Source: Aplysia californica (Eukaryota). Taken from it: a stretch of DNA of 51,660 nt. The position numbers and the translations under genes are program-made. Shown here piece by piece: positions 3,143 through 51,660 of the stretch. Location: assembly GCF_000002075.1 (NCBI RefSeq), contig NW_004797311.1, forward strand, positions 1,581,517 through 1,633,176. Direction: 5' to 3'. The notes under the pieces were generated by a model, which worked only from the letters and a program-made list of their open reading frames with translations, did no database searches and was not told where the DNA came from. The first letter of the stretch is position 1. Every line of letters starts with the position of its first letter.

Positions 3143-4189
3143 AGACATTGTAACAGTCAGTGGCACNNNNNNNNNNNNNNNNNNNNNNNNNNNNNNNNNN
3201 NNNNNNNNNNNNNNNNNNNNNNNNNNNNNNNNNNNNNNNNNNNNNNNNNNNNNNNNNNNNNNNNNNNNNNNNNNNNNNNNNNNNNNNNNNNNNNNNNNNN
3301 NNNNNNNNNNNNGCCTAGAGCACGGTCGTGCAGTGCCGCCCAAAATTTTTGAATGTTCTATTACGCAAAACACCCACAATAATATTATAAATGAAACCGG
3401 AAACAAACACTAGCCAAATATTATATCTAAACAAAGGTCCTCACTTGCGCCATTACTGTCATTTCTATGTCTATAGCGCCGTAAAACATCTACTATATGC
3501 CAAAGTCCACACGCTTTAGCTAAACAGAAAAAGGATATTCAACAGTGTAACCTGACCTATAAATCGCTCTTGGGGATAACCCAAGCGATGTCGACACTCG
3601 TAGCGAGTTTGGCGGTACAATAATATTAATAAGCCGGCACATGTCAAATGTTCTCCTGCCGAATAGTGCTGAAACATAACCCACTGTAGGTAGTCTAAAA
3701 ATAAACACGATAGACCCTACGCTCTTCTTTACTAGTATTATGGGAGCCCCGGAGCAACCCAGGGGAGTGCTCAAGTGAATTGTGATTGGTTCACTGTTTG
3801 TCTTGCCACTATTTTAAGTGACTCTGTAGCCGTGAACCTGAGGGAGGTGAACGTGACCGTCCTATGAGTTGTGCCTTTGAATGGTTTTGTAGTGGAGTAG
3901 TAAAAGTTATTACATGTACATGTACTTGAGTGTTCAGTTCCAATACAAGATGAACAAAATTGATGTTTAGGTAACAAACAAATTTAGTACTAGAAATAAA
4001 AGCGACAAGTAAAAAGAATGAAAATAAAACCACGAGGCCCTCCCTCACCAACCCAAAGATCCTAAACTTATACACCGTCTCATTTACTATGCCCTTGACT
4101 ATCTTCAGCATACCATAGCTTAATTATTATTGAGCACGCCCACTTTTTAGCCCCACGAGCCTCCCCTGAGATATATATATATATATATA

Positions 4190-5168
4190 TAGTAATCTCC
4201 GCCTAAGATCCCGGTGCTCGGGAGAAAGGAAAATGCGGGATCTTAGGCGAACCGGGATCTTAGCCGAATGGCCAGGGGGAAGAATCCACAGTAACTCATG
4301 GTCAAGCACAAAATCTGTACAATGACCTCTCCTTACTTTAAAATGAACTGACGTGACTCATGGGTACTAAAAGTTCTTTTCAGATGTCAGTTTTTCCTTC
4401 TTTTTTGTTTTGTTTGTTTGATACTGTGTCAGAAGGGAACCAGTTTACTTCAAGCAATGCGCCACATCAAAAATGTATTGCCTTCCATCTCTAATGGAGT
4501 TCCCCGCCCATGGCATGATGCATCATGCATAACTCGTTGTGCTTTGACCAAACCGACCAGATTAAAAAAGAAAAGAAAGGCATGTTCACTGCCAACAGAT
4601 GACCACATTACGCAGAGGCGATCGGACAGTCCACGATTATGGGCGCAAGTCTGTCTATGAAGTTAAAACACAAAACTGGTTTAGACGAGAGCGATGGTCG
4701 GGAAAACGTAAACGTCTACGAGTTCATAGTTTGATGGAATGCGGTCTGATCTAGGGTCTGATGCTTGCTTGTAGGCCCTCCCCACTTAGTGTGTGATGTA
4801 AGATCAGGCTGGCGGCTCTGGTGATCGGGGAGAGCACGGCATCGATGAGTTCACGCTTGGTGCGATCCCGTCTGGGGCAAACATTGTAACCGCTTATCGA
4901 GATTTACAACAGAGGTGTGATCGCATTCATGAGAGTGAATGATTCGTGACGCGACGGACCATATTATAATGATCGCACATCTTTGCTACTTGGTTGATTC
5001 TTAAATAAAGAAAAAATTAACTAAATTATGACCTGAAAAGCGGGATCTTAGCTCCTGCCGTGTGTGATCTTAGTGGTGACTTTTATATAAAAATTCTATT
5101 TTTCCAAAACAGCGGGTTCTTTGGCGAACCGGAACCATAAGCGGTGGGATCTTATGTGGAGACTACTG
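4190..5168 (+). mobile_element. MITE family A, copy 1 (Tc1/mariner-type, TA target)
   Basis: TIR (C)AGTA(A/G)TCTCCGCCTAAGATCC ... GGATCTTATGTGGAGACTACTG; inserted in a (TA)n tract; internal GGGATCTTAG repeats; homologous to the copies at 11872, 17205 and 26276. Confidence 0.85.
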
Positions 5169-9208: not shown

Positions 9209-9378
9209 TGTCCCCGTGCAAGAAAAATTCTGAAATTATGCAAACTGAGCTCAAAAATGTGAAATTATGCGATTCTGTTAATTTTAACAAAGAATGATAA
9301 AGGAAAATAATCACAAATCATGTAAAAAAATGATCAAATTTTGCTAAATTATGCGGGGTGCATAAAACCACGGGGACA
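9209..9378. mobile_element. 170-bp MITE with 8-bp TSD (hAT/Merlin/P-type)
   Basis: TIR TGTCCCCGTG / CACGGGGACA; perfect TSD GATACAGC at 9201-9208 and 9379-9386; internal AAATTATGC x3. Confidence 0.85.
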
Positions 9379-10059
9379 GATACAGCCCTACAAAACGTCC
9401 CAGCATACAGACGGAGAGGCCCACCTCCCTTTTTTTCACCCCCCCCCCCCCCCCCACACCCACCCAAAAAACAACCAGCAAACAAACCAAAACCCCAAAC
9501 AAACAAAAAAACAAACAAACAACCCAAAAATTAAAAACCTAACAACAACAAAGAAACAACCCCCCCCCCCCCCCGGAAATCGAACATATACATGCGTAAA
9601 ATCCCTGTTGTTGTTATTAATTTTTTGGGGGGCAAAACTGTGCTAAATCAATCAAACTTAAAAGTTAAAAGTAGTGTTTTCGCGCATGTATTGAGGTGTT
9701 TTAAAATCGGTGGAATTGAATAGTATTTCATATCAAATAAATTGAGAGTTGTGTATTGGCATTAGGATAAAAAGTATTTTATTACGATGGTTTCAAACAG
9801 AGTGAAAAACAGAGCAGTCACTAGTGCCACAGAAAATTTGGATCTAAGGTGTTTAGGAGTTGTTAGTTTTGTGTAGAGTACAAACCTTTTTGGGCATGGA
9901 CTATGTTAAATTTTGGACATAAAAGCTACCGTGTAGTGTATCATTTCATCCCAAATGTCGCGCAAAGTTGCAAACAGGGCGTTTGAATTGGGAGCAAAGC
10001 GGTGTTTCTTAGCTTTTGTTTCATGGGGCTTAACATTACATGTATACATATATATATGT

Positions 10060-18873: not shown

Positions 18874-19706
18874 CGGTCGAACTTGTGTAAGACAGCCACC
18901 CATTGTCAAGGAGAAAAGTGGCCGTATAAGACAGGTGGCCGTCTTAGGCAGGACTGACCAAGATGAAGAAAACAAACCATTCCATTCTGAGGTCCCAACC
19001 GAAGGTAGCCGCATTGTTGTTGTTGTTGTTGTTGTTGTAAAATGTCATTTCCGCTGGGTTTTTCTTTTTCTTTTTTTTTTCTTTTGTTGCTGCTTTTGTG
19101 CAAGGGTGACAATAAAACGAAATGTGTCAGACAAGGAGGACCGAGTGCTATGGTAAAACAAACATATGGGTCGCCATCACTCGGAGAACGAGCAACGCTT
19201 CTGTCACAAGTTCACATTGACATCCATTGTTACTTTGTTACAGACTGGGTAAACAGTGACCACTCCTCTCACTTACGATTTTAATGAGTTCTGGGTGGGG
19301 CGTCTGGGTTATGAAGGATCACACGATTACCTCACCAGCGGCTGAAAATTTGTTACCTTTAGGTCAACAGTGGGAGGGGCCTACGCAACATGATCGGTTG
19401 GAAGGACTAGACCTACCTAACACAAACAGGTGATTGGATTATGACGGCTCGCCTAGAACGCCAGGGGCCAATGCACAGTTTATGACAAAACGTAATGGAG
19501 TCATTAAGGTGGCCGTCTAAGACAGGTGTTATTACTTGGTGTGATAGGAGTTGTGTGTTAAAATGTGGTGGCCGCGGCCGCGTTGGACAGGTGCTCGTTT
19601 TACACAGTTAAATTATATAGAAAAAAACGCAAGGGGGGGAAATGGAAAGTGGCCGTTTGTACAGGTGGCTGTCTTAGAGAGGTGGTCGTCAGGGCAGGTT
19701 CGACTA
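18874..19706 (+). mobile_element. MITE family C (pogo/Tigger-like CAGTCGAACC termini), longest copy
   Basis: TA-CGGTCGAACTTGTGTAAGACAGCCACC ... GGTGGTCGTCAGGGCAGGTTCGACTA-TA; subterminal GGTGGCCGTC repeats. Confidence 0.8.
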
Positions 19707-22630: not shown

Positions 22631-23422
22631 CTAGAAAGAAAATTAGATACAAACACAGACAGGTTTAATTCAAAGCAATCTGTAAAATTTACAGCAAATT
22701 ACCATTCCACTATATAGGTGATGAGAGGAGGCGACTGGTGGCATCTACATGCAGTCAAACCTGTCAAAGACGGAATCGCAAAGGAGCCAGAAAAAAATTG
22801 TCCTAGACATTCTCCGTCTTGGACAGGGGAATTTCAGGTAGAGGTGGGGTTTCAGAGCGTTATAACGGTCACCTATCCGGTTACATGCAGTGGTCAAAAC
22901 TTCAAGCCTTCCAATTGCTATCATAACTTCTCTGATAATGGCATGCTTACTTATCCATTGCCACCAGTGCTTGCATCTCATTGGACCACTGTTTGACAAA
23001 TTAAAAACAGAAACAGTTGAACATCTCTAATGTTTCCACCCTTAGCTCCTCCCATCGATCAATGCCTCTCTTGAAAAAAAGTCAACTAAAAATTGAGTTA
23101 CACATTCTAATAACAAAGGAAATGATTGATTTGTATTAAAATATTCCACGAAAAACGGTTTTGCTTCCATTCTCATAGAAATTGAAAATTTTGACTTGAT
23201 GCCAAATAGGCAGAAATGTTACTTTTATGTTCTAGTACCAAAAAAATTAGGCTGTTGTCTTCCACTCAAGAAATGAAGACTGACACAAAATTTTGTACTG
23301 TCTCCAGATCAGACATTTATACGGTATTATCTAGATTAGGGCACATGATCCAACATTCACTTGTCTTTTTACTCCATTTTCTTACAGAAGTGTACATGAT
23401 ATGGTTACAACATTTGGCTCAC

Positions 23423-25675
23423 CTCTGATTGTAGATTATGTATTTTTCTGTGTCTTGTGAAATTTCCCATTCTTGTAAAAGAAGCATTACACAGGTCACA
23501 TTTGAAAGTTTTTTTGTGAGTTCTCTCATGCTTGGTGAGTTCCATTTTCGATTTAAAAGTTTCCTCACAGTTGACACAAGGAAACAAGCAGGGGGCCTCA
23601 ACTGCATCTTCTACCGCTGGCTCCTCTGAACTAATGGCATCTTGTGCATTGCACTGGTTTGAGTAGATTTCAGAACACGACACAGGCTGGAGGAAAGGTT
23701 CTGCATTACCTGTAGAAGCCTCTTCCGTCATTATCACAGTGGCTGGAATGTTTGAAGAGTGAGCTGAAGGTGTGACATTCACAAGTGTGGCATGAGAAGC
23801 GTCTGAGCCTTCTGATTCTGAGTTAGAAGTCAGGTTACTGGGATGGAAGAAAACAGCGTTGGTGCCCAGAACAATGTCAGTTTGAGTTTCCTTGGCCGAC
23901 ACTTGTACTGGCTGGGCCTCACCTACTGTGACAGCAGACGCTACAGCTTGCTGACTACCTGGCATGATGAAGGCATTGTTGTACTGTCCCATTTGCAGCA
24001 AGCCAGAGATATCAAGAAGGTCTCCAGACAAACACCTCAGCATGGGCACCTGACCATCACCATAGCTTAAGAAAACATCATTAACAGAGTTGTTGGTAGA
24101 ACTATTCAAAACAATAGACAAGGGAATCCTCGATAGATTTGGTAATTGAGAACCACCCATACTAGCACTTTGAACAAACGATTTACTATCTGTCGAGGCA
24201 TTGTCACTCACATGAGAAGATGACTCAGGTGTACTGGCAGAGAGTGTTGACAAAGTTTTGAAGCTAAATCCCTCTGAGAGTCTGTCAGGCTCCTCTGGTT
24301 GCTTTGACTTCTCTTCCTCTGAAAGAATAAGTGTTTCCTCCGATGCAATCAATTGAGAGGCCCTAGAAGATGATGGCTTGTCAGTTTCCAGAATTACAGT
24401 ATCACTTCTAGTCAAACTATCTTGTTTAACATCTTCATTGTCAGTGAGCTCTGTGTCAGTATCATTTTTATCCTCTACTGCTGTTTGAAGCTGCTGATTA
24501 CTTGTCTCTTCTTGAGATGAACTTTGGAAATCCATCAAAACTAGTGGTAGTTTATCACAATTGTCATATTTGCTCCCCATATTACTTTTCTCCTGTGGTG
24601 GAACACCTGCTGCTGTATCTGCAGGGACTGATGAAGCTGGTGCTTTTGCTTGCTTCACAAGGAGAAAAACAGATTGTGGAATCCTGTGACCACCCAAGAC
24701 AGCCACCCCTGCATTTGCCAAAGTGCTAGAGGAGAGCAGTGTGTTGGGCGGGGAGATCTTGTCACAGGCTGAGATTGTACCAATTGCATTGATAACCTTG
24801 GCATTGTTCGCTGATGGATTGAATACACTTACAGAAGGTATACTTTCCAGAGATACACTTCTGTCTGAGATATCAGATAACAAACTAAAGGGTTTGTCTA
24901 TAGAAAAAAGTGACTTCTCTTTGGATAAAATTGTTTTTGTAATACTGTCTTCAGAGAGCACTGACACTGAGTTAATAGAGAGAGCATCTGATGGCAGCGA
25001 TAAAGCTGAACTAAGTAGTAAAGTGTCAGATGACATGAGAGCAGGTTTACAAGAAGCCTCAGAGTCTGTGCCCACCAAGTCTGCTTTCCCTTCAATATCC
25101 ATGACCTCACTGACCGGTACATTTTCAGACAGCCTTTGTTTCCTATCACCAACACTACAAGACGTGAAAGAGTTTTGGCTGCTCAAGCACAGCAGGGGTG
25201 TAGACGTCACAGTATCAGGATTCCTACCGCCTAGATCTTGTTGAATCAGTAAAGGAAGGACACCCTGAAAATTACTTCCTCCATACTCAGCTGATACACT
25301 GGCTTCTTGAGACAAAGTATTGTCATTTGGCCTGTGTATAAAAGCCGTAGGCAGTATATTTGCAGCATTTATATTTCCTAGTATGATGGGATGATTAACA
25401 CTATGGATTATATGTGAAGGATCAGAAACCTTGACCTGAACAGAGTTTTCTTCTCCAGAGGGACGAACTGCATGAACAGAGGCCTGCCTACTGCTAGGAA
25501 TTGAGGTCATGTTGACTTCAGGATCATCTGGAATTTGCAATGAATTCGCTGGGTTAGCAATCATATCTGTACTGTCATAATTCTCTGAGACACTGATGGT
25601 AGGCGCTGAAGTCAGTAAACAAGCCGTCTCAAGTTGACCAACAGATAAATCTTGTTCTGGACCTTGATTATCCAT
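23423..25675 (-). CDS. C2H2 ZNF gene, coding exon 1 (751 codons: Ser/acidic low-complexity region plus fingers 1-2)
   Basis: Long ORF from ATG (MDNQGPEQ...) to a GAG|gtgagc donor; fingers CVNCEETFKSKMELTKHERTH and CDLCNASFTRMGNFTRHRKIH; probable exon acceptor at 25841. Confidence 0.93.
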
Positions 25676-26181
25676 TGTAGAAAACAAAAATAAATGCAGA
25701 AAGGATCTTTTATCTCTTATCACAAAGTTAACTTGATTCCTAGGAATGCAGAAAAATCTTGCTTGAGGATTTCATCTACATTCCAGTGAATTTCCATCCA
25801 TGGCACTCTGTGAAATCACCTTACAGCAGTCTTTGATTGACCTAAGAATAATGAAAAACAAGAAAGAAAATCAAATCAAATATAGTTAATATAATATAAT
25901 ATATTTTTAAAACGCAAAGAGGGAAGTGGGAAGTATTCATTAGTGCAGGCGATATTGTCCTGAACTGGCATCCATTAGAGATGGTTCAATTGTACTTTAA
26001 ATACAAAGAGAGGGGCAAATTAAATTTTTAAAAAGACCCCCCCCCCAAAAAAAAAGGCCAGAAAAAATATGAAAATTTGTTTTTAAAGGAAATTATGATG
26101 AGATAAAAAAATTTAAAAAAATCAATGCAGAAACAAGAACTGGAGATCTCACAATTTGATGTCTCAATCCCATAGCCTACA

Positions 26182-32980: not shown

Positions 32981-34320
32981 TTGGCAGTCATTTTCTCTCT
33001 AATTTTACCTCTGAATTCAGGTGATTCCTACCTCCTTCATTCGCAAATATCTCAACTTGTATTCAAGAAACATGGATATATAGTTTTCACCAAAAGCAAG
33101 ACAAATGAACAAGCTTTAGGATGACAACAATAACTCTAAACTCCCCAAAATTGACGAGAGCCAGATTCCACCGTACCGTGTCTTGACACATATATATACA
33201 CTAAAGTAAATATCATGCATAAAAATATCTAGGCTTAGATATATAATAGAATCTGTAGTATGCGTTTCACCACCATTAGAGGAATTGTACCATCTACTAG
33301 TCACATTTATTTACTATCACCCCCATCCAATCTACCAAAGGATAGCAATGATTGAAGAACAAGATATCAAAATAAGAAACAAAAAGAACAAAAAAAGAGA
33401 CAGGTTGGCTAGATGTATTTGCAAGAAAGCAGATAAGACAAAATAATATGAATAAATGGACAATGGGAAGTTGGGGAACGGACACAATGCTGAGTGACTG
33501 ACTGACTGACTGATGAGTAAATAAACAAGTGACTTAATACCCGGGCATAATAAAAACAAAACAACAACAAAATGCTTGGACTGTGTCAATATTTTCTGCA
33601 AAGGCCTTCTTGTGTCTTATGTCTGTCAAAATTTTGAAATATTCCTTTCTTGTACCTTAAGAAGCATATATGCCGTTAACAATCCCTCTTCAAAGACGTA
33701 TTTCCTGAGCATCTTTTTCAAACTGCATTCAGTTTCTTGGCATTTTCTTCAACTTTTTGTATCTGGAACAGTCTACAGGTACCATTCACATTCGTCAATA
33801 TTTTGTGTAGGTAAATAGTACACACATGATACAAGAGTGGACAACTACAAAAGAAGTTTAAAAGAAATTATATAGAGTCCTTTAAAGTCATTTTCAGCCA
33901 GTGAATGCACATGTACCGGCGGTACATCTCAGTCACAGATTAAACCGGTACCTCAGTCCTACTTTTTCTCTATAGATGTACTGGTGTAACATAAAAAAGA
34001 AAAGACATCAGGTTGAACTATTTTGAACAAATGTCAAGTTTAATATTTTGAGATTCCATTCCAAGCCATGAAAAACTTTGAGGGAAAAAAACATGAACCA
34101 TTAGAACTGGAATCAACATAGAATTAAAATTTGGGATCTGCATTAATTATACTTAGTTACAATGCATAAATGATCAAAGTTACATGATGCAAATAATTTG
34201 AAATAACAATAAGGACTTCTTTCCAACAATTTCAGCCAGACAAATGAATACAGATCTTTGAAACACCTGAGAAAAAACAATGTATTTTTACAATCAACAT
34301 TGACTTACGGAAAAGTAATT

Positions 34321-35147
34321 CAGTGGAGTCCACTTATAATGAATCCGGAAAAAACGAGAAGTCTGTTATAAAGACACGATTCTAAAACCCTGCTTTTTTT
34401 CTCTTCTTTACCTTTGTAAATAAAATACTGCTATAGCGCTATCAGACAAACACACGAGTCGGTTATAGTTATAGCGGAATATAGCTGCTGCTGTGCACAG
34501 TGCATGGGCCAATTATACACAAAGAAAAACCTCGCCAGTTGAGAAAGTTGTTGGTGATCTAGTGAAACAAAGAATAGGAGAGCCCACGTGTGCCAACAAT
34601 GAAGGCCGGAGCGACTGAATGGGGAGGGTGTGACATGCGCAAACAAGCAGAACGCATCGGGTGATAGGCCAGCGTAAGCCTAGTTTAGATTATCAAGGCC
34701 TACCATGCCTCTCACTTCTCCGATGTGGGGATGGAGAGGTTACAGCAATGTGATGGACGGAGCGAATGTGTGACGTGCGCAAGCAGATAGAATGCACCAC
34801 ATAGTGAGGTGGGGTGGGGTGGGGGGAAAACACAGTGGGCGAGTTAGCCCAGAGCCCTTTCTTTCTGATCGCCAACGCCGAGTTGTCAACATCGCTAGAT
34901 CTAGCGCTAGAGAAAGAAACCTGATTCGATTTTTGATCAAGTAAGATCTAAAGGTCACGTTGAAACAAAATCATCATCAGGGGAGATAGAAAAAGGAAAT
35001 AAACAGAACACCAAACTCATAGATTAGGCCTACTTTACAGTTTACCCTTTAATTTATTACTGGATCCCTTATAGTTATAGCGAGAATCCTGCTATAGCGG
35101 ACATTTTGCTCCGGTCCCCTCCCTCTCGTTATAACAGGATTCCACTG
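34321..35147 (-). mobile_element. MITE family B, copy A (uninterrupted)
   Basis: TIR CAGTGGAGTCCACTTATAA / TTATAACAGGATTCCACTG-TA; reverse complement is homologous to the copies at 44355 and 46782. Confidence 0.9.
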
Positions 35148-35506
35148 TATCTTGCAATTGTGACAATAGTAAAAAGGTCAAGCAATCGTCAAAATAACGT
35201 ACACAAGATCTTTCATCCAGCTCATAAACCTTTATCTTTAAGTATTCATTTGTATTGCAAATGAATAGAACTGGATCCATGGAACAGATGGCAAAAGATA
35301 GTAGCCAATGGAAAATATAACTCAGTATCAATCTCAAGACGAAAAAGACAAAGAATGACTAGGTAGAGAAGGTTTAACAACTGACAAGACACAAATTGAC
35401 AAAACAAAGTGAAGAACATCAACTTTGCCCTTGCATTCATTGCAACATACATTTTCTTGAACATTTGTCCAATGAGACACAAGTGCCACCATCACAAGAC
35501 ATTTAA

Positions 35507-41037: not shown

Positions 41038-41953
41038 AAGTGGAACTCGCATTCAACGAAGTCGCCGGGCCTGACCTTCAATTTAGTTGAATCCAAGTGT
41101 TATAGTTACAGGAAACATGAGGTTTTGTTGTGTCAATAACTACAGGCACCGAGCAAGTAATGCATACTATATTTCGACTTCCTCAATCAAAAGTAGCGTA
41201 GCAAGGTTTCAAATGATGGGCATTTTGGTTTTCGTTTCTTTAATGCCATACCAAAGAAATGCTGGAAAATTCTAAGAAAATACACTGAACTCTACCAATC
41301 ACACACTGCAAAAGATTCAATTCCTTCAATGGCACGCCCGTATCTCCTATCATCTATGATGTATTGTTTGCCAAACAAGTTGTGTTGCTGTGTAAAGCCT
41401 AGCATACGTCAAATGTCTGATTCCACAGACCAGTGCGCAATTCATTATAATATGTAGATTACGTCAAGACTAACTAATCATTGTAATATACAGGAGCCGG
41501 GGGGAAGGAACTGACTGTGACGCGTTTCTATCTCTACTGACATTCCATGTTCAGACTGCTTGTGCCCTCTCACCCAAGACACACGCACACACAGTACAGT
41601 CACACATGTGCTGGTCACTGGTTCGATTCTGACACATGCTAGGAAGAGACGTGCGTATGCCAACAACGCGTATGTTGGTATAAAAGAAGGCCGCTGATTG
41701 ATCGCATAAGATATAAACAATAAGTAAAGCGAATAATGGTTCACCATGCAGGTGCCATGGACGGTTTCCAGGAATAGATAAACTTTGTTTCGGGAGAAAA
41801 ATAACAGAAGCTATGTCAGCAGGGGCTGTTCATTCTGCAAGCAATTCTTTGAATCTGAGCTTGCTCATTTATGTATTTTTGTTGAATTTACTGATTTTTA
41901 AGAATTAAAAAAACGGGGAATCCATCTCCTTTCATTAAATTGGAGTTCCATTG
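41038..41953 (+). mobile_element. MITE family D, copy 2
   Basis: GTGGAACTCGCATTCAACGAAG ... GGAGTTCCATTG-TA; lies in ARL14EP intron. Confidence 0.8.
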
Positions 41954-44354: not shown

Positions 44355-46401
44355 CAGTGGAATCCTGGTATAATGAGAAGGAGGAGACAGGTGCGAAATG
44401 TCTGTTCTGCCGTCGTAAGGGAAAACGACGAATGGTCAAAATTTTTCCATTATTTTATTTTTATTTATTTCATAGAGTATTTAATTCTGCATCTGATGGT
44501 GTAAAAATTTTTGTCATATCCTAATCCGTTGTTGCGTAATTGAGAGTTCCATCGTTTTCCCTTACACTGGCAAGCTCCGAACCAGAGCTCAGTGTAAGGG
44601 AGAACGACGAATGGTCGATCGGTCAAGGATCACTGCTCGCTCGGCGTTGTCCCCTAGTCTCTGCCGTTGGGCAAATTCGGCATCACTTAGTGTGTCTTTC
44701 TGTCTGTCTTCACGTATTAGGCCTATGCTGATGGTGTGAATTGACAAGAGCAGGCGATCGAGTATAATAATGTCTTGCAGATTCAAACTGTCCTTGTCGA
44801 TCTCTACTTTGTGGTATGTTTTCCGATCCGATCAACTGAATCCTTTATTAAATAAATACAACGCGTCGCATTATCTCTCCCAAAAGCGTTTGTGATACAG
44901 TCTTGTTAGATTGTTACATTTCTTACGAGAAAGTTTGACTTTGCAATGATTTGATCGTATTATTGACATTCTAACATTGTTGATACTTTTGGTCGTGCAG
45001 GGAAAATTTTTGCAATTAGCGAAAATAAAAGTAAAACTCGCTTCTGAAGAGAATACAATAAAGAGATATCATGGAGACCAAACTTTGGTTCCGAATGAGA
45101 CAGTTTTTAATCAAGCTGTTGAAAATGTGTGCACATCTGATTTGAACCCTGACTGTGTAGTATTTAACCAAGTGAGGAAAGAAAACTAAGGACGTCTTCC
45201 GAGTTACAGTTGGGATATAACAAACACCTATCTTTATACGTATAATAGATAGTTTGTATACATCTTATTTTTATTTGCAGTAACTAGTACACAGTCATTA
45301 CTGTCAATAATGCGTCACAACTGACCATCGCTTACGCCCATAGACGTTCAAAAGTGTAAAGGAGAATGACGAACCGTACCATTCGTCGTTTTCGCTTCAT
45401 TCGCAAGGCTCACCTGAGGGTGTGCAATGTATGGGAGAACGACGAATGTCGAATAATTTTGCTACTTTTCAACCTAAACCATTCAAACTTTAGAAACTGC
45501 TTTATGAACACCTCAATCAGATATCTGGTGAATTACAGCTTAAAAGATTGAAAAATAGAAGAGATAAAGTGAAAACAGTTCTTGCCTCTCCCGAAAAATT
45601 TGCCTCGCTACCTGTGCAGGACCATTCGTCGTTTTCCCTTACGACTGCAGTGTTATTAAAGTAGGCCTAATCTATGAGTTTGGTGTTTTATTTATTTCAT
45701 TTTGTTATCTCCCATAATGATGATTTGGTTCAACATGACTTCCAGGTCTTACTTGATCAAAAATCGAATCAGGTTTCTTTCTCTAGCGCTAGCAATGTTG
45801 ACAGCTCGGCGTTGGCTGACGATCAGAAAGTTCTCTGACTCAAGGCTAACTAGCCCTCTGTGTTGTCTCCCACCCCACCACACCCTGTGGTGTGTTCCGT
45901 CTGCTTGCGCACAATGTGAACATACCACATCCTGCCCACATCACACAATCGCTCCATCTATCACAGCACTGTGACCTTTCCATCCTCGCATCGGAGAAGT
46001 GAGAGGCATGAAGGCCTAGATAATCTAGACTAGGCTGGTCTGTCACGCAATGCGTTTCTGCTTATCTGCGCATGCCACACCCTCCCCACTCATTCGCTCC
46101 GGCCTTAATTGTTGGCACACGTGGACTCTCCCATTCTTTGTTTCGCTAGATATCACCAACATGTTTCTCAACTGGCCAGGTTTTACACGCATACCATATT
46201 GTGTAAATGGCCTATGCATTGTGCACAGAAGCAGCAATATTCCGCTATAACCGACTCGCGTGTTTGTGTGATTGCGCTATAGCAGTATTTTATTTACAAT
46301 GATAAAGCAGGGGGAAAAAACAGACTTTTACTACTTTTAGAATAGTGTCTTTATAACAGACCTCTCATTATTTCAGAACTCGCTATAAGTGGACTCCACT
46401 G
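44355..46401 (+). mobile_element. MITE family B, copy B (interrupted by a Sola1-like element)
   Basis: TA-CAGTGGAATCCTGGTATAA ... TATAAGTGGACTCCACTG-TA. Confidence 0.9.
44407..45650. mobile_element. Non-autonomous DNA transposon with 4-bp TSD (Sola1-like)
   Basis: 31-bp TIR CTGC(C/A)GTCGTAAGGGAAAACGACGAATGGTC; TSD TGTT on both sides, consistent with the single CTGTTA at the same site in copy C. Superfamily inferred from the 4-bp TSD and CTGC termini. Confidence 0.8.
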
Positions 46402-46781
46402 TATTGTTTATAAATATAATAATTTATAGAACCACTCCCGTCTCATAAAGGGTGTTATTTTGTAGCTCTTTTCGGTTTCTTTAGGGTCCTGAACACAACT
46501 TGGGCATAAAAAAACGTCGCAAATGGTTATTTCAGGGGACCCCCCCCCCCCTTGACTATTAAAGCAAGCTTAAACAAAAAAGCGGCATGGATAGCAGCCA
46601 TCAGACGGGAGTGATTCTATAAAAATACCCCCTTACCCCCTTTTTCTTTGCTTACATCTAACATGCATTACAACAAACTTGAATAAATACACATATGGCA
46701 GGTAAAAAACACTCAATATATTAGGCCGCTACCATTTTACACTTCTGCTCCAGAAGTTTTGAAGTCCAGGTACCACTACTA

Positions 46782-49596
46782 CAGTGGAATCCTGTTATAA
46801 CGAGAGGGAGGGGACTGGTGCGAAATATCTGTTATAGCAAGATTCTCGTTATAACCTGTATTACATGTCCTGGGCAACAACGTCATTGCACACCAGACAG
46901 GTCCGTAAGTGCTCAGTTCTCCCCAGCATCAAAGCCCGCAAGGTATCCATACTGATTGTGGCTGTCTGATTATGGCGACGTCTTTCCTCTACAGATAATA
47001 GTTCCTTTCTTCCTTCTCCCCTCTCTATCCCCATTTCCTGCATCCTAATGATTGCGTGGTGTTCTGCTGTCTCCCTGTCTTCTTCATCCCGCAACTTTTT
47101 CTCCAGGGTCTTCAACACTTCTCCTTTGTCAAATTTCACCTAACCAACAACCACAGCACTGCCTGCCAGCCTATCAGACTCCTCATTGCCTTTCACTTCA
47201 GAGTGCCCAGGACAGAATATCCACGTGATAGCTCTAAGTGATGAGTGTTGTATTGGGTTCATCCATTCACTCTGAAGAAGCCCTTTCTCGACCCTTCGCA
47301 AGATGCTCTAAGAGTCTGTGACAATGATGAGATGGGTAGTTTTTGTTCTTGTATTTTGAAGCCAGCCAAGCGCTCTTGTTATGGCCTCAGTCTCCATTTT
47401 CATGCTTGAAGTCGTTCTTTCTATGGCCCCTGACATGCTATGAACCTTTTTATTCCCACTGTACACCACAAAACCCCATCCACTTCTCTCACCCCTCCTG
47501 ACTGATTCATCCGTATAGATCACTGGATCCTCTGGCTTGAAATGCTCTTCAATTAACTGTCATATGTCATTGTTGTTAATGACAGCAGCACATTCCCGTC
47601 TTTCACGACCCATAGTGATGTGAACGTTGGCCAGGCTTCTGCAAATGGGGCTCAGTTCAAACCATTCCTTTCCACAGCATATTTCATTGATGCCACAAAC
47701 TTTCCTCAAGGAGTCTTCGGCTCCTGCCATCCATGAGCTGCCCCGTTTGACCCTGTTTCCTTTGATGCTGCTTAGGTTGTCATGCAAAGGGTGCCTCGGG
47801 TCTCCCAAAACATTCAAGTACAACTTTGCCTGTGCCACCTTATGCCTCACTCCGATGCTGGCCAGGTCAAGGATGTATCTCATACAGACAACATGGGTGT
47901 CCTTTGTGCAACCTAGAACAGCCCTCACAGCTGCATTTTGTACTCTCTCCAACCTGCCTTTCTGAGTCTTGGACAGGGAAAGGATGCCCAGACCATAGTC
48001 TATGACGAAATGAACCACCAGCTGCATTAAGAGAAAAAGAACTCTCTGTTGAATTCCCACTGAAGCCAAGGTCTTCACTACATTGATGCCCTTCTGAGCC
48101 CCGACAGTAACATTGTCAATATGTCTTCGGAAAGAAAGTGTCCTGTCCAGAGTGATTCTCAGATACTTCAACTCATGCTGTCTGTCTATGAGAAAGTGGT
48201 CAAACACAATTGGAGGGGTAGGATCTTTCACAATACGATTGTTTTGTTGAGTGAGCACCAGATGACCTGTGCTTTGTCTGGATTGATGACCGGATTGTAT
48301 TCCTCACACCAAATTGCGACCTTGCTCAGCCTGTCCTGTAGCATCCATCCAACTGCTAGCCTATCATGACCTTGTCCGTAGACCATCACATCATCTGCAA
48401 ATATTAGGATTCTTCTTGCTCCACTTTTGGCAATTTTGAATGTATTATATTTATATGTTGAACAGAACCGGTGATAACCTTGGGGCAGTCCTGAGGCAAT
48501 CACTACTGGGTCTGACATCCATCACCCACTTCTCAGTGCCACCTTCCTCTCAAACAGAGCAAACAGGGGTCAACATCCATTTCCATCAGGAGATCCATGA
48601 GCTTGCAGTAATCAACTCGGTTGTAAACATCCTCTAGGTCTACAGCAGCCATTGCTGTCTCCTCCTTTCTCTGGAACGATTCAAATACATCAAAGGCTAA
48701 CACAGCCATGTTTGTGCAGGTGTCTTTCCCTGGTCTATAGCTTCCAAGGCCGTCTGGAAGGAGCTTTTTCCTCTCTAAGTAATTTGCCAGCCTTTTGGCC
48801 ACAATCTTTTCCATTCTGTAGCCCTTGATGTTGGGATTCTTGTTATAAGGGATCCAGTAATAAATTCAGGGAAAACATTAAAGTAGGCATAATCTATGAG
48901 TTTGATGTTCTGTCATAATAATTTCTTTTTGTTATCTCTCCTTTGACGATGATTTAGCTCAACATGACCTCTAGGTCTTACTTGATAAAAAATCAAATCA
49001 GGTTTCTTTCTCTAGCGCTAGCGATGTTGACAGCACCAGAAAGAAAGGGCTCTAGGCTAACTCGCCCGCTGTGTTGTCCCCAACCCCACCATACCCTGTG
49101 GTGCGTTCTGTCTGCTTGCGCACATTGGGTACACACCTCATCCTGCCCACATCACACATTCGCTCCATCCATCACAGCATTGTGACCTCGGCTCACCATC
49201 TCCGCATCGGAGAAGTAAGAGGCATGGTTGGCCTGGATAATCTAGACTAGGCAGCATGGCCTATCACGAGATGCGTTCTGCTTGTCTGCGCATGCCACAT
49301 CCTCCCCACCCACTCGCTCCAGTCTTCATTGTTGGCACACGTGGGCTCTCCCATTCTTTGTTTCACCAGATCACCAACAAGTTTCTCAACTGGAGAGGTT
49401 TTACATAATATATATATAAATATAATTCACCTACACTGTGCACAGCAGAAGCAATATTCCGCTATAACCGACTCACACTGTTTGTCTGATTGCGCTAAAG
49501 CAGTTGTATTTTATTTACAAAGATAAAGAAGGGAAAAAAACAGGGTTTTAGAAGAGTGTCTTTATCCAGATTTCTCGTTATAAGTGTACTCCATTA
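46782..49596 (+). mobile_element. MITE family B, copy C (interrupted by a LINE)
   Basis: TA-CAGTGGAATCCTGTTATAACGAG ... TTATAAGTGTACTCCATT. Confidence 0.9.
46855..48834 (-). mobile_element. 5'-truncated, frameshifted non-LTR retrotransposon with RT and RNase H (I-group)
   Basis: RT motifs EKIVAKRL, VDLEDVYNRVD, GLPQG, FADD, LKYLRITLDRTLSF; RNase H motifs IYTDES, ETEAI, VTDS, WIFCPGH..VKGNE..DRLA; 14-bp TSD GATTCT(C/T)GTTATAA at 46841-46854 and 48835-48848. Confidence 0.92.
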
Positions 49597-49788
49597 CTAC
49601 TACCAAGGGACCTGTGTAATTCTACAATCTAAGTACTACAAAGTCAAAGACAAAAATAAGAAGAGGCTAGCAGTACTCAATGACGGCTAGACGGCTAGGC
49701 TAGCCTCAAATTAATAGTGATGGCAAGACTGGCAAACAGCAAAAAATAGGCCTACTCAATTATGCTTGCTACGTCGCATTGCGCTTAC

Positions 49789-49920
49789 CTCCAGTGCTAA
49801 CACGCCGCGTTGCAATTAGCGCCAGTGCTAAATAAAACGCAGTGTGTGTAAATATAATAAGGCTTAAAATCTACGCTTCGTTGTTGGAAGTTCTGATAGC
49901 CGAATCGAGAGCGCGTCTGT
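49789..49920 (-). other. Candidate non-coding first exon of the ARL14EP-like gene
   Basis: GAG|GTAAGC donor at 49788 in a CpG-rich unique segment; no ATG and an in-frame stop. The upstream boundary is a guess. Confidence 0.35.
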
Positions 49921-50635
49921 GTTTGAACCATAATTTTTTTTATAAGCGTGATCTAGATCTAATGAGACCTGTGTACTCAACAGGTTTCGGTAAGGCCTTA
50001 CCTAAGTCCTTAGAAGTTTAAGTACACGGCTAGCCATAAATCGAAAATATATCCATCATCCATCTTGTCAAGTAGGCCTAGATCTATGATCAGTTCTTTT
50101 CGGGAAGGCTATCTACATCTAGATCTAGTGGTAGACCTACTACTAGATCTAGATCTATCAACATCCACACTGGATCAGGTTGAAAATAAATCCTGACAAC
50201 GATGAGCAAACGCCAAGTGTGTTTCTCTATGATTGACAAACCAAATGAACCAACTTGAACTGTGAACAAAAAAGCGGTGATCTTATACTTTAGCACGTTA
50301 AATTCCCAAAGCCAAAGTCTACTAATCCCCGACTCAGATCTTCAAAACTTTGAACTGGCCTTAAAATGCGCAAACTACCGTAATTTTGTCATGGATAGAT
50401 GGTAAATAACATTGGATTTTGGTCTTCTATCATGATTTTTGGAAGCCATAATTAATGAGTAAAATCAAGATCTAGAGTCTAGATCTAGATTTAAAAGTGG
50501 TCGCTCGTTACGGAAGTCCTCAATTGATGAAGAATTTAACATGCTAAAGGCTAAAGTATAAGATTACCAAAAAAGCAAACATCATTCCGACATGATGTCG
50601 TTTCACTTCGATTTCATGGTTAGAAATCTTCCAAA

Positions 50636-50700
50636 TCTAGATCTAGAATTGATCTAGATCTAGATCTAGATCTAGATCTAGATATCTAGATTTAGATCTA
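50636..50700. repeat. Palindromic (TAGATC)n hexamer array
   Basis: TCTAGATCTAGAATTGATCTAGATCTAGATCTAGATCTAGATCTAGATATCTAGATTTAGATCTA. Confidence 0.95.
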
Positions 50701-50893
50701 CACTACACTATGCCAAGTTACATTTTTTTATGAACTGTAAAGCTACCTGGCGGTCCGATGAGTCAGGGGTAACTTTACAACGAACTACAAACTGCAAGAG
50801 GCAACGTTAAGTCAAGCAAAGATAAAGATCAAGGCTATGGCTAAAGCAACTTAGAGAGGAATTTCGAAGTCTAGATTCTAGGTCTTTGGAAAT

Positions 50894-51059
50894 ACTTCCG
50901 TAACGAGCGACCACCCCATCAAACACAATAAAGAAGAGCCAGAGGCCTAGACCTAACGCTACCCCTAACCCTACCCCTACCCTTACTCCTACCCCTACCC
51001 CTACCCCAAGCCCTCAATTCTGCTCTGTCTCATAGTGGTCGCTCGTTACGGAAGTCCTC
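50894..51059. mobile_element. Inverted-repeat element with telomere-like (CCCTAM)n core (Helentron/HINE-like)
   Basis: Perfect 21-bp IR ACTTCCGTAACGAGCGACCAC (50894-50914) / GTGGTCGCTCGTTACGGAAGT (51035-51055) flanking CCCTAA/CCCTAC repeats; third motif copy at 50497-50517. Confidence 0.55.
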
Positions 51060-51660
51060 CCAGGTCTTTTCTTAGACAACGGGGTCTTTCTTTGATGTAA
51101 TTTAGATCTACCTAAATGATGGCGTTCCTTACAATGATTACTCACCTCTAGTTTTGACGTCAGAGTCAGGAGCAACAAATGAGCGTCTTTATGATTCAAA
51201 AAGCGTGCTAAAATTTTGTGCACTTTTCGCAACCACCCAGAGTTCACAGACCTCTGCTGCGGACTGTCTAAAGATAAAGACTAGAATCTAATACAGATCT
51301 AGATTTAGGCCTACTGAACTGAAATTGAAAATCGCGGCATTCTCCAATGCGCCTAGATAGTAGAGTGTGAGTGGCGAGTGGCGATGAGTCCGACAACAAT
51401 CCTATTTTGAAACTGCAAAACTGTCTTCCAGGCACACCCCTTCTTTTGGTTAACTCCGGTTTTACCAGAGCTGGTTTTACTTAGAAGAGAGGCTAGCACT
51501 TGCGGCTAGCTGCAGCCCCGTCAGCCAGAAGCTGATTGGCTGCGGTAGGCTAGTGGTAAATATTGTGTTGGGCCTATGATTCCAGTTTTAGCAGTTTGGA
51601 AACTTCTGAAACAGTGCTATAAATATATGAATCCTAATCTACCTATTCCAGTACGGAGCT

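Follow-up and report, generated by a model that had tools for sequence, protein, structure and literature searches.

The window analysed here is a 51,660-nucleotide stretch of the Aplysia californica genome (contig NW_004797311.1, positions 1,581,517 to 1,633,176). Close to its right end, at 49740-51320, it holds a dense cluster of octamers of the form TA-GRYC-TA. It is one of thousands of places in the genome where the same mutational product, six bases inserted at a TA dinucleotide, has accumulated locally. The insertions are real, recurrent and untemplated. They are TA-phased and clustered, and they are commoner in less CpG-depleted DNA. We infer a transposon as their maker, and also which kind of element it was: the source would be the excision of cut-and-paste elements of the IS630/Tc1/mariner type, a reading to which we give a probability of about 0.55.

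Six-base insertions recur at TA dinucleotides

Octamer-bearing sequences were compared with their paralogs, in part within a 270-kb sample composed of the window, 200 kb from 20 other genome places and ten 3-kb loci (pieces L001-L030). This sample is 0.03% of the assembly, which has 927,310,431 bases in 4,332 contigs. Every octamer reads TA-NNNN-TA and, in pairs of filled and empty alleles, the empty allele has a single TA. The left arm of a miniature inverted-repeat transposable element (MITE) in L012 is filled and reads GGTA-GATCTA-GTTCC; its own right arm and the copy in L004 have a plain TA. In L013, the insertions GGCCTA and TGCCTA follow two TA dinucleotides 10 bp apart, and neither is present in L017.

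At a TA site in the tail of a short interspersed element (SINE), 17,587 copies with exact flanks are empty, against 604 with insertions of 1-14 nt. Fifty exact-flank insertions have the form TA-NNNN-TA. Two of them carry GATC and one GGCC, most being AT-rich or tandem duplications. We estimate a chance expectation of ~0.2 GATC and ~0.1 GGCC if the letters follow base composition. The flanks of this site, T-TA-T, are unlike either insert. At a C-TA-G site in the SINE head, with no similar sequence near, three of nine insertions are GATC and the others are near-tandem duplications. Another C-TA-G site has GATC in ~30 of 66 insertions, and a neighbouring TA has received one GGCC and one CATG; this site is given less weight because a TAGATCT is close by and several matches are on one contig. 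GATC insertions occur mostly at C-TA-G.

In the SINE, L012 and ~835-bp family comparisons, the filled state is derived, as an insertion relative to an empty ancestral site. The last of these concerns window position 34896, within a family of ~835-bp elements, where the preliminary description had pointed to a filled and an empty copy. The difference is real (14 copies filled, 256 empty) but the event is not a fresh local one. The filled copies are 84-93% alike and only 74-84% similar to the empty ones. Because the 14 filled copies resemble each other more than they resemble the empty copies, we regard position 34896 as a single old event in the founder of a subfamily.

Fold-back and template-switch models were worked through by hand for the conversion of CTAGA into CTAGATCTAGA. 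None gives the product from the local sequence, and such models are also inapplicable at the T-TA-T site. The fillers are 4 bp long and palindromic (GATC, GGCC, CATG, CCGG), inside the range of the footprint literature cited below. The paralog comparisons bear out the earlier view of TA-GATC-TA and TA-GGCC-TA as 6-bp insertions at TA, which are recurrent and have no local template.

The excess is genome-wide and consists of distinct palindromes

All 18 octamers listed in the preliminary description for 49740-51320 match TAGRYCTA exactly (49747, 49954, 50073, 50079, 50120, 50132, 50144, 50150, 50480, 50638, 50655, 50661, 50667, 50673, 50693, 50948, 51103 and 51306), where shuffling leads to an expectation of ~0.1. 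Forty-five are found in the whole window, against 2.47 expected, and no dinucleotide-preserving shuffle contained more than 5. Further clusters are present elsewhere in the window. Density was compared over 195 one-kb bins from the window and the 200 kb sampled elsewhere in the genome. The highest density is that of bin 50001-51000, which has 14 octamers at 7 separate loci; over all bins the mean is 0.48 loci per kb. The local density is real, but the cluster is not a local oddity, since the enrichment extends to the whole genome, in which TAGATCTA occurs 177,062 times.

TAGATCTA is also the most over-represented 8-mer of the 270-kb sample, above dinucleotide microsatellites. Words of the form TA-palindrome-TA were counted in this sample after masking of deliberately targeted repeats (235 kb, 15,769 TA sites) and compared with a third-order Markov background. 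The excess that had been anticipated for TA-NNNN-TA words was found, with 104 observed against 3.8 expected for TAGATCTA, 29 against 2.3 for TAGGCCTA, 11 against 0.9 for TACCGGTA and 42 against 5.4 for TACATGTA. The twelve remaining words are close to expectation, except TATATATA (182 against 12.3), which is part of the (TA)n dinucleotide microsatellite. TAGATCTA occupies ~0.66% of the TA sites (104/15,769). The four enriched cores, GATC, GGCC, CCGG and CATG, all consist of two bases, N1N2, followed by their reverse complement.

The grouping of the octamers into a single GRYC class was mistaken. The palindromes GATC and GGCC are distinct and differ in their flanks, which are C..G for the GATC type and, more weakly, G..C for the GGCC type. 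Perfect GATC and GGCC copies are enriched 13- to 28-fold. The hybrid cores GACC and GGTC reach only 4.3-fold, as expected of one-transition neighbours common to GATC and GGCC; other one-mismatch neighbours are at 1- to 2-fold. As the hybrid cores are weakly enriched and the flanks differ, TA-GRYC-TA is to be read as two motifs plus decay products.

The 7-mers TAGGCTA and TAGCCTA were also counted in the window and L001-L030, with 62 occurrences against 16.3 expected (3.8-fold). This is the form expected of a three-base, central-mismatch footprint of an element with GGC...GCC ends. The Sleeping Beauty footprint TAC(A/T)GTA is analogous.

Phase and spacing of the octamers

Growth of a hexanucleotide microsatellite, (CTAGAT)n, with decay and with copies carried by repeats, could also produce many octamers. 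Its rare seeds would come from insertion without a transposon, for instance error-prone end joining at TA. We regard this explanation as possible but unlikely, although slippage and duplication clearly act as well. As in known hexanucleotide microsatellites, there is an array of period 6, at 50635-50700, and length varies between samples. This array, found with Tandem Repeats Finder (TRF), is the only place in the region with clear head-to-tail unit copies; those at 50111-50157 and 50464-50490 are weaker. Hexamer periodicity decays in the flanks of TAGATCTA. Paralogs differ by whole blocks (40 bp between L012 and L004) or by gain or loss of one unit (L020 and L021), and the octamer belongs to the consensus of several dispersed repeats. 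The failure of the 270-kb survey and of pattern searches to yield a matching transposon is a further point in favour of the microsatellite.

What such a microsatellite does not provide is the origin of the seeds, which are not adjacent duplications. Slippage cannot make GATCTA at CCTTA^TGCAG, GGTA^GTTCC or GGCCTA^GAGG (the caret marks the insertion point), where the flanks are dissimilar. A generic end-joining error would not repeatedly choose the same two palindromes. Phase is a second difference. A random-phase microsatellite has equal counts in all frames; the genome has 177,062 copies of TAGATCTA against 95,245 of the frame-shifted ATCTAGAT, and in the sample the six frames rank as TA-frame, then C/G-frame, then the others. 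The runs therefore start and end on TA.

Spacing is a third difference, as most neighbours are not in tandem. In the first 100 genomic matches of TAGATCTA, neighbours lie a median of 131 bp apart, with 67% of the distances at or below 1 kb (25% expected) and only 18% equal to 6. In the region itself, 6 of 17 gaps equal 6. From the gap and frame counts, arbitrary-phase tandem arrays do not account for all copies. Chains of identical cores number 21 for the 104 GATC octamers of the sample, 0 for the 29 GGCC and 2 for the 42 CATG. GGCC units come from the same process and are never in arrays, which also speaks against the microsatellite. Chaining of GATC only fits an agent that prefers CTAG.

Octamer clusters are found in less CpG-depleted DNA

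The ratio of observed to expected CpG (CpG o/e) was used as a proxy for germline methylation. It is 0.58 for the whole window. Over the 195 bins, octamer loci per kb correlate with CpG o/e (Spearman 0.24, P 6e-4), bins with at least 3 loci having a mean of 0.74 and empty bins 0.54. A zinc-finger gene in the window illustrates this relation. No octamers occur in its body, where CpG o/e is 0.23-0.34, against ten over 27-33 kb, the 5 kb upstream. At 46.9-48.8 kb, an insertion of 2 kb that is poor in CpG has no more than one. The clustered DNA, both upstream of the zinc-finger gene and in the cluster region, has a CpG o/e of 0.6-0.96. The gene corresponds to a 772-aa open reading frame (ORF) at 23405-25723 on the minus strand, with C2H2 zinc fingers in its C-terminal part.

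The preliminary description had linked the cluster to open chromatin and placed it at a putative promoter. On the first point, clustering far above chance, in less CpG-depleted DNA, is upheld; the CpG correlation hints, indirectly, that clustering may reflect accessible germline chromatin. On the second point, support is lacking. One polyA RNA run is essentially without reads on the non-repeat part of 49.6-51.5 kb, and among the window ORFs none near the cluster matches Pfam. Because the window ends at 51660, a gene further right is possible, and a promoter is neither shown nor excluded.

The same data bear on the idea that the octamers are functional sites for a dimeric DNA-binding protein, for instance one of insulators or promoters; selection would maintain them, and they would cluster because a regulatory region requires many. 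Perfect palindromes with half-site TAGR, the sharp drop from perfect to one-mismatch copies and the clusters in less CpG-depleted DNA upstream of the zinc-finger gene would all suit such sites. Against this, fresh insertions in scattered SINE tails, SINE heads and MITE arms point to a mutational source and not to selection, and the flanks preferred by GATC cores are opposite to those of GGCC cores. The RNA run has no transcript start near the cluster, and 177,062 copies would make a very large cistrome. Binding sites are an improbable explanation.

An error of sequencing or assembly, such as leftover linker or restriction-site sequence, can practically be dismissed: the four enriched cores do all resemble four-base restriction sites, a resemblance only, but contigs of other, independent samples and studies contain the octamer-bearing sequence at 49964-50301, 50701-50921 and 51037-51497, each with 1-2 differences (no gaps in the first and third, 2 gap letters in the second), and octamers are found inside repeat subfamilies that amplified later.

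Search for the source element

The preliminary description had proposed repeated insertion and excision of a TA-targeting element with GR...YC termini. The 6-bp insertions at TA do have the form of footprints, but the element itself was not found. A scan for terminal inverted repeats and censuses of repeat boundaries and nested insertions over the 270 kb, together with pattern searches, failed to reveal any element that is flanked by TA and has GA..TC or GG..CC ends. Apart from CAGT-type elements, the scan and censuses gave a single CC..GG element and nothing else. For the CATG filler, a match exists in the TA-flanked CAGT... elements, which are abundant, and for the CCGG filler in the CC..GG MITE of L023. 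In the 270 kb and at the SINE site, the GATC and GGCC fillers match the terminal bases of no resident TA-duplicating element. Pfam scans of 14 window ORFs showed no transposase, the C2H2 zinc-finger gene at 23405-25723 being the only match. Because the sample is 0.03% of the genome, the absence of a matching element is weak evidence.

Several candidates were rejected. The one at L028 9379-9996 proved to be a palindromic satellite, that at L012 4299-5485 an inverted repeat extending beyond the TA, and that at L023 122-7297 a pair of inverted SINE copies. The 200 CCTTAGA copies at the SINE site, considered as possible element ends, are another SINE subfamily. What had been taken for a high-copy repeat is one 22-bp tandem array confined to a single contig, at L022 7750-8000 (contig C509:78448-78694), with at least 11 perfect copies of CATGGTAGTGACTATCTGTGGA... 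and unique in the genome; it has no bearing on the source of the octamers. The L028 satellite (9340-10000) is built of ~55-60-bp tandem units (GGTGGACCCCGGGGTC...) followed by the same units inverted, and has several TAGATCTA and TACATGTA at unit borders. Also in L028, at 3831-4869, an element of 1,037 bp has inserted inside a TAGGCCTA octamer of a copy of the ~835-bp element; the insert has inverted ends of CAGACCTGCCA... and a 6-bp duplication, AGTAGG.

Excision footprints as a possible source

Tc1/mariner-type elements are cut 2-3 nt inside their 5' ends (PMC2170065, PMC7913693). Their footprints hold a filler of 2-4 bp or of 0-4 bp between the TAs (PMC2170065, PMC7913693, PMC9976928). In its reference list, PMC2170065 cites work on a preference of the bacterial IS630 for TA inside CTAG. 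The octamers share with IS630/Tc1/mariner/pogo footprints the TA on both sides, the short palindromic filler derived from inverted ends, and the status of insertions relative to empty paralogous sites. They differ in that a donor element whose ends match was not found. The target choice of IS630 also finds a parallel, in the strong preference of GATC insertions for C-TA-G. G follows the GATC octamer in 47-63% of cases against a background of 19%, and GATC accounts for the 3/9 and ~30/66 insertions at CTAG sites against 2/50, 0 and 0 elsewhere. None of the present results points to an IS630-like transposase in the A. californica genome.

In the mechanism that we propose, the element would duplicate TA on insertion and would be cut two bases inside its 5' ends. 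After its exit, the donor site would be resealed as TA, two bases of one end, two bases of the other end, and TA. The product would be palindromic because the ends of the element are inverted repeats. The GATC type would land mostly at C-TA-G, leaving the scar CTAGATCTAG. As CTAGATCTAG holds two CTAG sites, repeated visits, with duplication and slippage, could build phased (TAGATC)n runs. GGCC scars would stay single because they create no new preferred site. As a more tentative extension, which we do not hold to be probable, the TA-GATC-TA units, ~1.8e5 in number, would form, with the less frequent GGCC, CCGG and CATG units, a self-amplifying archive of germline excisions by TA-duplicating transposons, concentrated in germline-unmethylated, accessible DNA.

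A number of observations weigh against excision as the source. The main gap in the argument is the lack of a donor element. The abundances of scars and elements are also mismatched, because GATC is the commonest scar while CAGT elements are the commonest TA elements. Two of the five tested TA sites (G-TA-A and T-TA-A) have no GATC or GGCC insertions. At the C-TA-G site with ~30/66 GATC, where TAGATCT lies 6 bp away and several matches are on one contig, templating or a subfamily could inflate the count. The six extra bases at window 34896 are one inherited event. TAGATTCTA and TAGAATCTA (27 against 1.7 expected), as well as TAGATATCTA, are equally explained by one- or two-base slippage. Finally, the link with CpG, over 195 bins, is a weak proxy.

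Organization of the cluster region

The octamers of 49740-51320 had been taken together as local scars. Fifteen are local; the three others (49747, 49954 and 50948) arrived inside repeat copies. The local ones are those of the 50073-50086 chain, the 50111-50157 group, 50464-50490 and 50635-50700, and two isolated octamers at 51103 and 51306. Read-based comparison at the locus made use of contigs from other samples, most of the output being repeat-derived.

Just left of the cluster, at 48844-49579 on the minus strand, is part of a non-autonomous, TA-flanked element of ~835 bp with CAGTGGAATCC... inverted ends, Tc1-like, recognized by BLAST against copies in L011-L030 and at window 34316-35150. 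Several copies of this family have TA flanks and inverted ends of 17-23 nt. The window has three copies, at 34316-35150, 45657-46405 and 46780-46854 + 48844-49579. The third is split by a 1,989-bp insertion (46855-48843) with a CpG o/e of 0.19-0.34, which holds a 232-aa ORF (47560-48258, minus strand) with no Pfam match.

Next to it, 49660-49977 (plus strand) aligns with L001 as a patchy copy of a dispersed repeat, with a 28-nt identical block at ~49950-49977 and a common block at ~49739-49755. Since both repeat copies carry the octamers at 49747 (TAGGCCTA) and 49954 (TAGATCTA), these were inherited and not locally made. Words of the GGCTAG type are dense at 49660-49710 and 51490-51560.

At 50073-50086, the unlike cores of TAGGCC-TA-GATCTA share one TA. 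This chain, already pointed out, is genuine; hetero-chains are only mildly enriched across the sample (5 against 1.8 expected). The near-palindromic group at 50111-50157 contains four octamers (50120, 50132, 50144 and 50150). Two 21-nt arms, 90% complementary and 2 nt apart, surround the centre TAGACCTA, and TRF assigns to the group a period of 6 and 7.8 copies with only 68% matches. A short degenerate (ATCTAG)n array of 4.3 copies (TRF), in which a single octamer (50480) is perfect, lies at 50464-50490. Run X10 has a contig in which 50470-50490 is longer by ~33 bp of CTAGAT-like sequence, the alignment jumping back from 50490 to 50470 with 12 letters between. The hexamer array at 50635-50700, (ATCTAG)n with 10.8 copies and 80% matches (TRF), carries six octamers (50638-50693) and internal variants such as TAGATATCTA and TAGATTTA. 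Its read depth is single-copy or lower, and reads seem cut there.

A complete MITE occupies 50888-51061 (50880-51069 with its target duplication), with copies in L001, L004 and L006-L010. Like hAT- and P-like MITEs, it has inverted ends of 26-27 nt, an 8-bp duplication (AGGTCTTT, at 50880-50887 and 51062-51069) and a copy number of ~2,000; its 21-nt end has 2,012 exact or near-exact matches in the genome. It also contains an internal telomere-like CCCTAA/CCCTAC run. The L001 copy has its own 8-bp duplication, GAAAAATC. The octamer at 50948 (TAGACCTA) is part of the family consensus, several copies sharing an internal TAGACCTA or TAGGTCTA. The MITE is a bystander, with one octamer through its consensus and no TA targeting. 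Members of the family are ~175-190 bp long with GGGAGGACTTCCGTAACGAGCGACCAC ends and a telomere-like run of variable length; solo ends exist, and the same ends are also found around other insides. One solo end lies at 50497-50521 (plus strand, 100% match to the 21-mer) and is outside the octamer process.

To the right, an isolated TAGATCTA at 51103-51110 stands in single-copy DNA and is present in the contig of another individual, which covers 51037-51497 with 2 differences and no gaps. At 51292-51313, AGATCTAGATT-TAGGCCTA represents a decayed GATC unit next to the GGCC octamer at 51306. In run X10, whose organism bears a different label, a contig aligns to 51146-51384 with one difference and 6 gap letters; the gap, somewhere in this span, could be a segregating scar at 51295-51313.

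A further dispersed repeat has in its consensus the 14-bp palindrome ACG-TAGATCTA-CGT (window 19380-19420 and 41440-41475; L003, L009, L013 and L017). The copy near 19408 is longer by one unit, TAGACC, and the one near 41461 reads TAGATTA instead.

Implications

Footprints as such are known. To our knowledge, a scale of ~1.8e5 copies, tight clustering at the kilobase scale and growth into phased arrays have not been described for them. Literature searches gave cloning primers alone for the motif strings, and those on footprints and microsatellites gave no report of the phenomenon. Accumulation by the hundred thousand, kilobase clustering and growth into a phased palindromic satellite would be new. 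If the octamers are not footprints, it has still to be explained how six bases are inserted at TA so specifically and without a template.

If they are footprints, cut-and-paste elements would shape this genome mainly by leaving and not by staying, their scars seeding a phased satellite and marking zones at the kilobase scale. Past germline accessibility would become readable from sequence alone, there would be a concrete way in which a palindromic microsatellite can be born, and caution would be called for in motif discovery near mollusc promoters. Should the archive reading also be true, the genome sequence by itself would record both formerly open germline chromatin and how active an element was that has since become rare or been lost.

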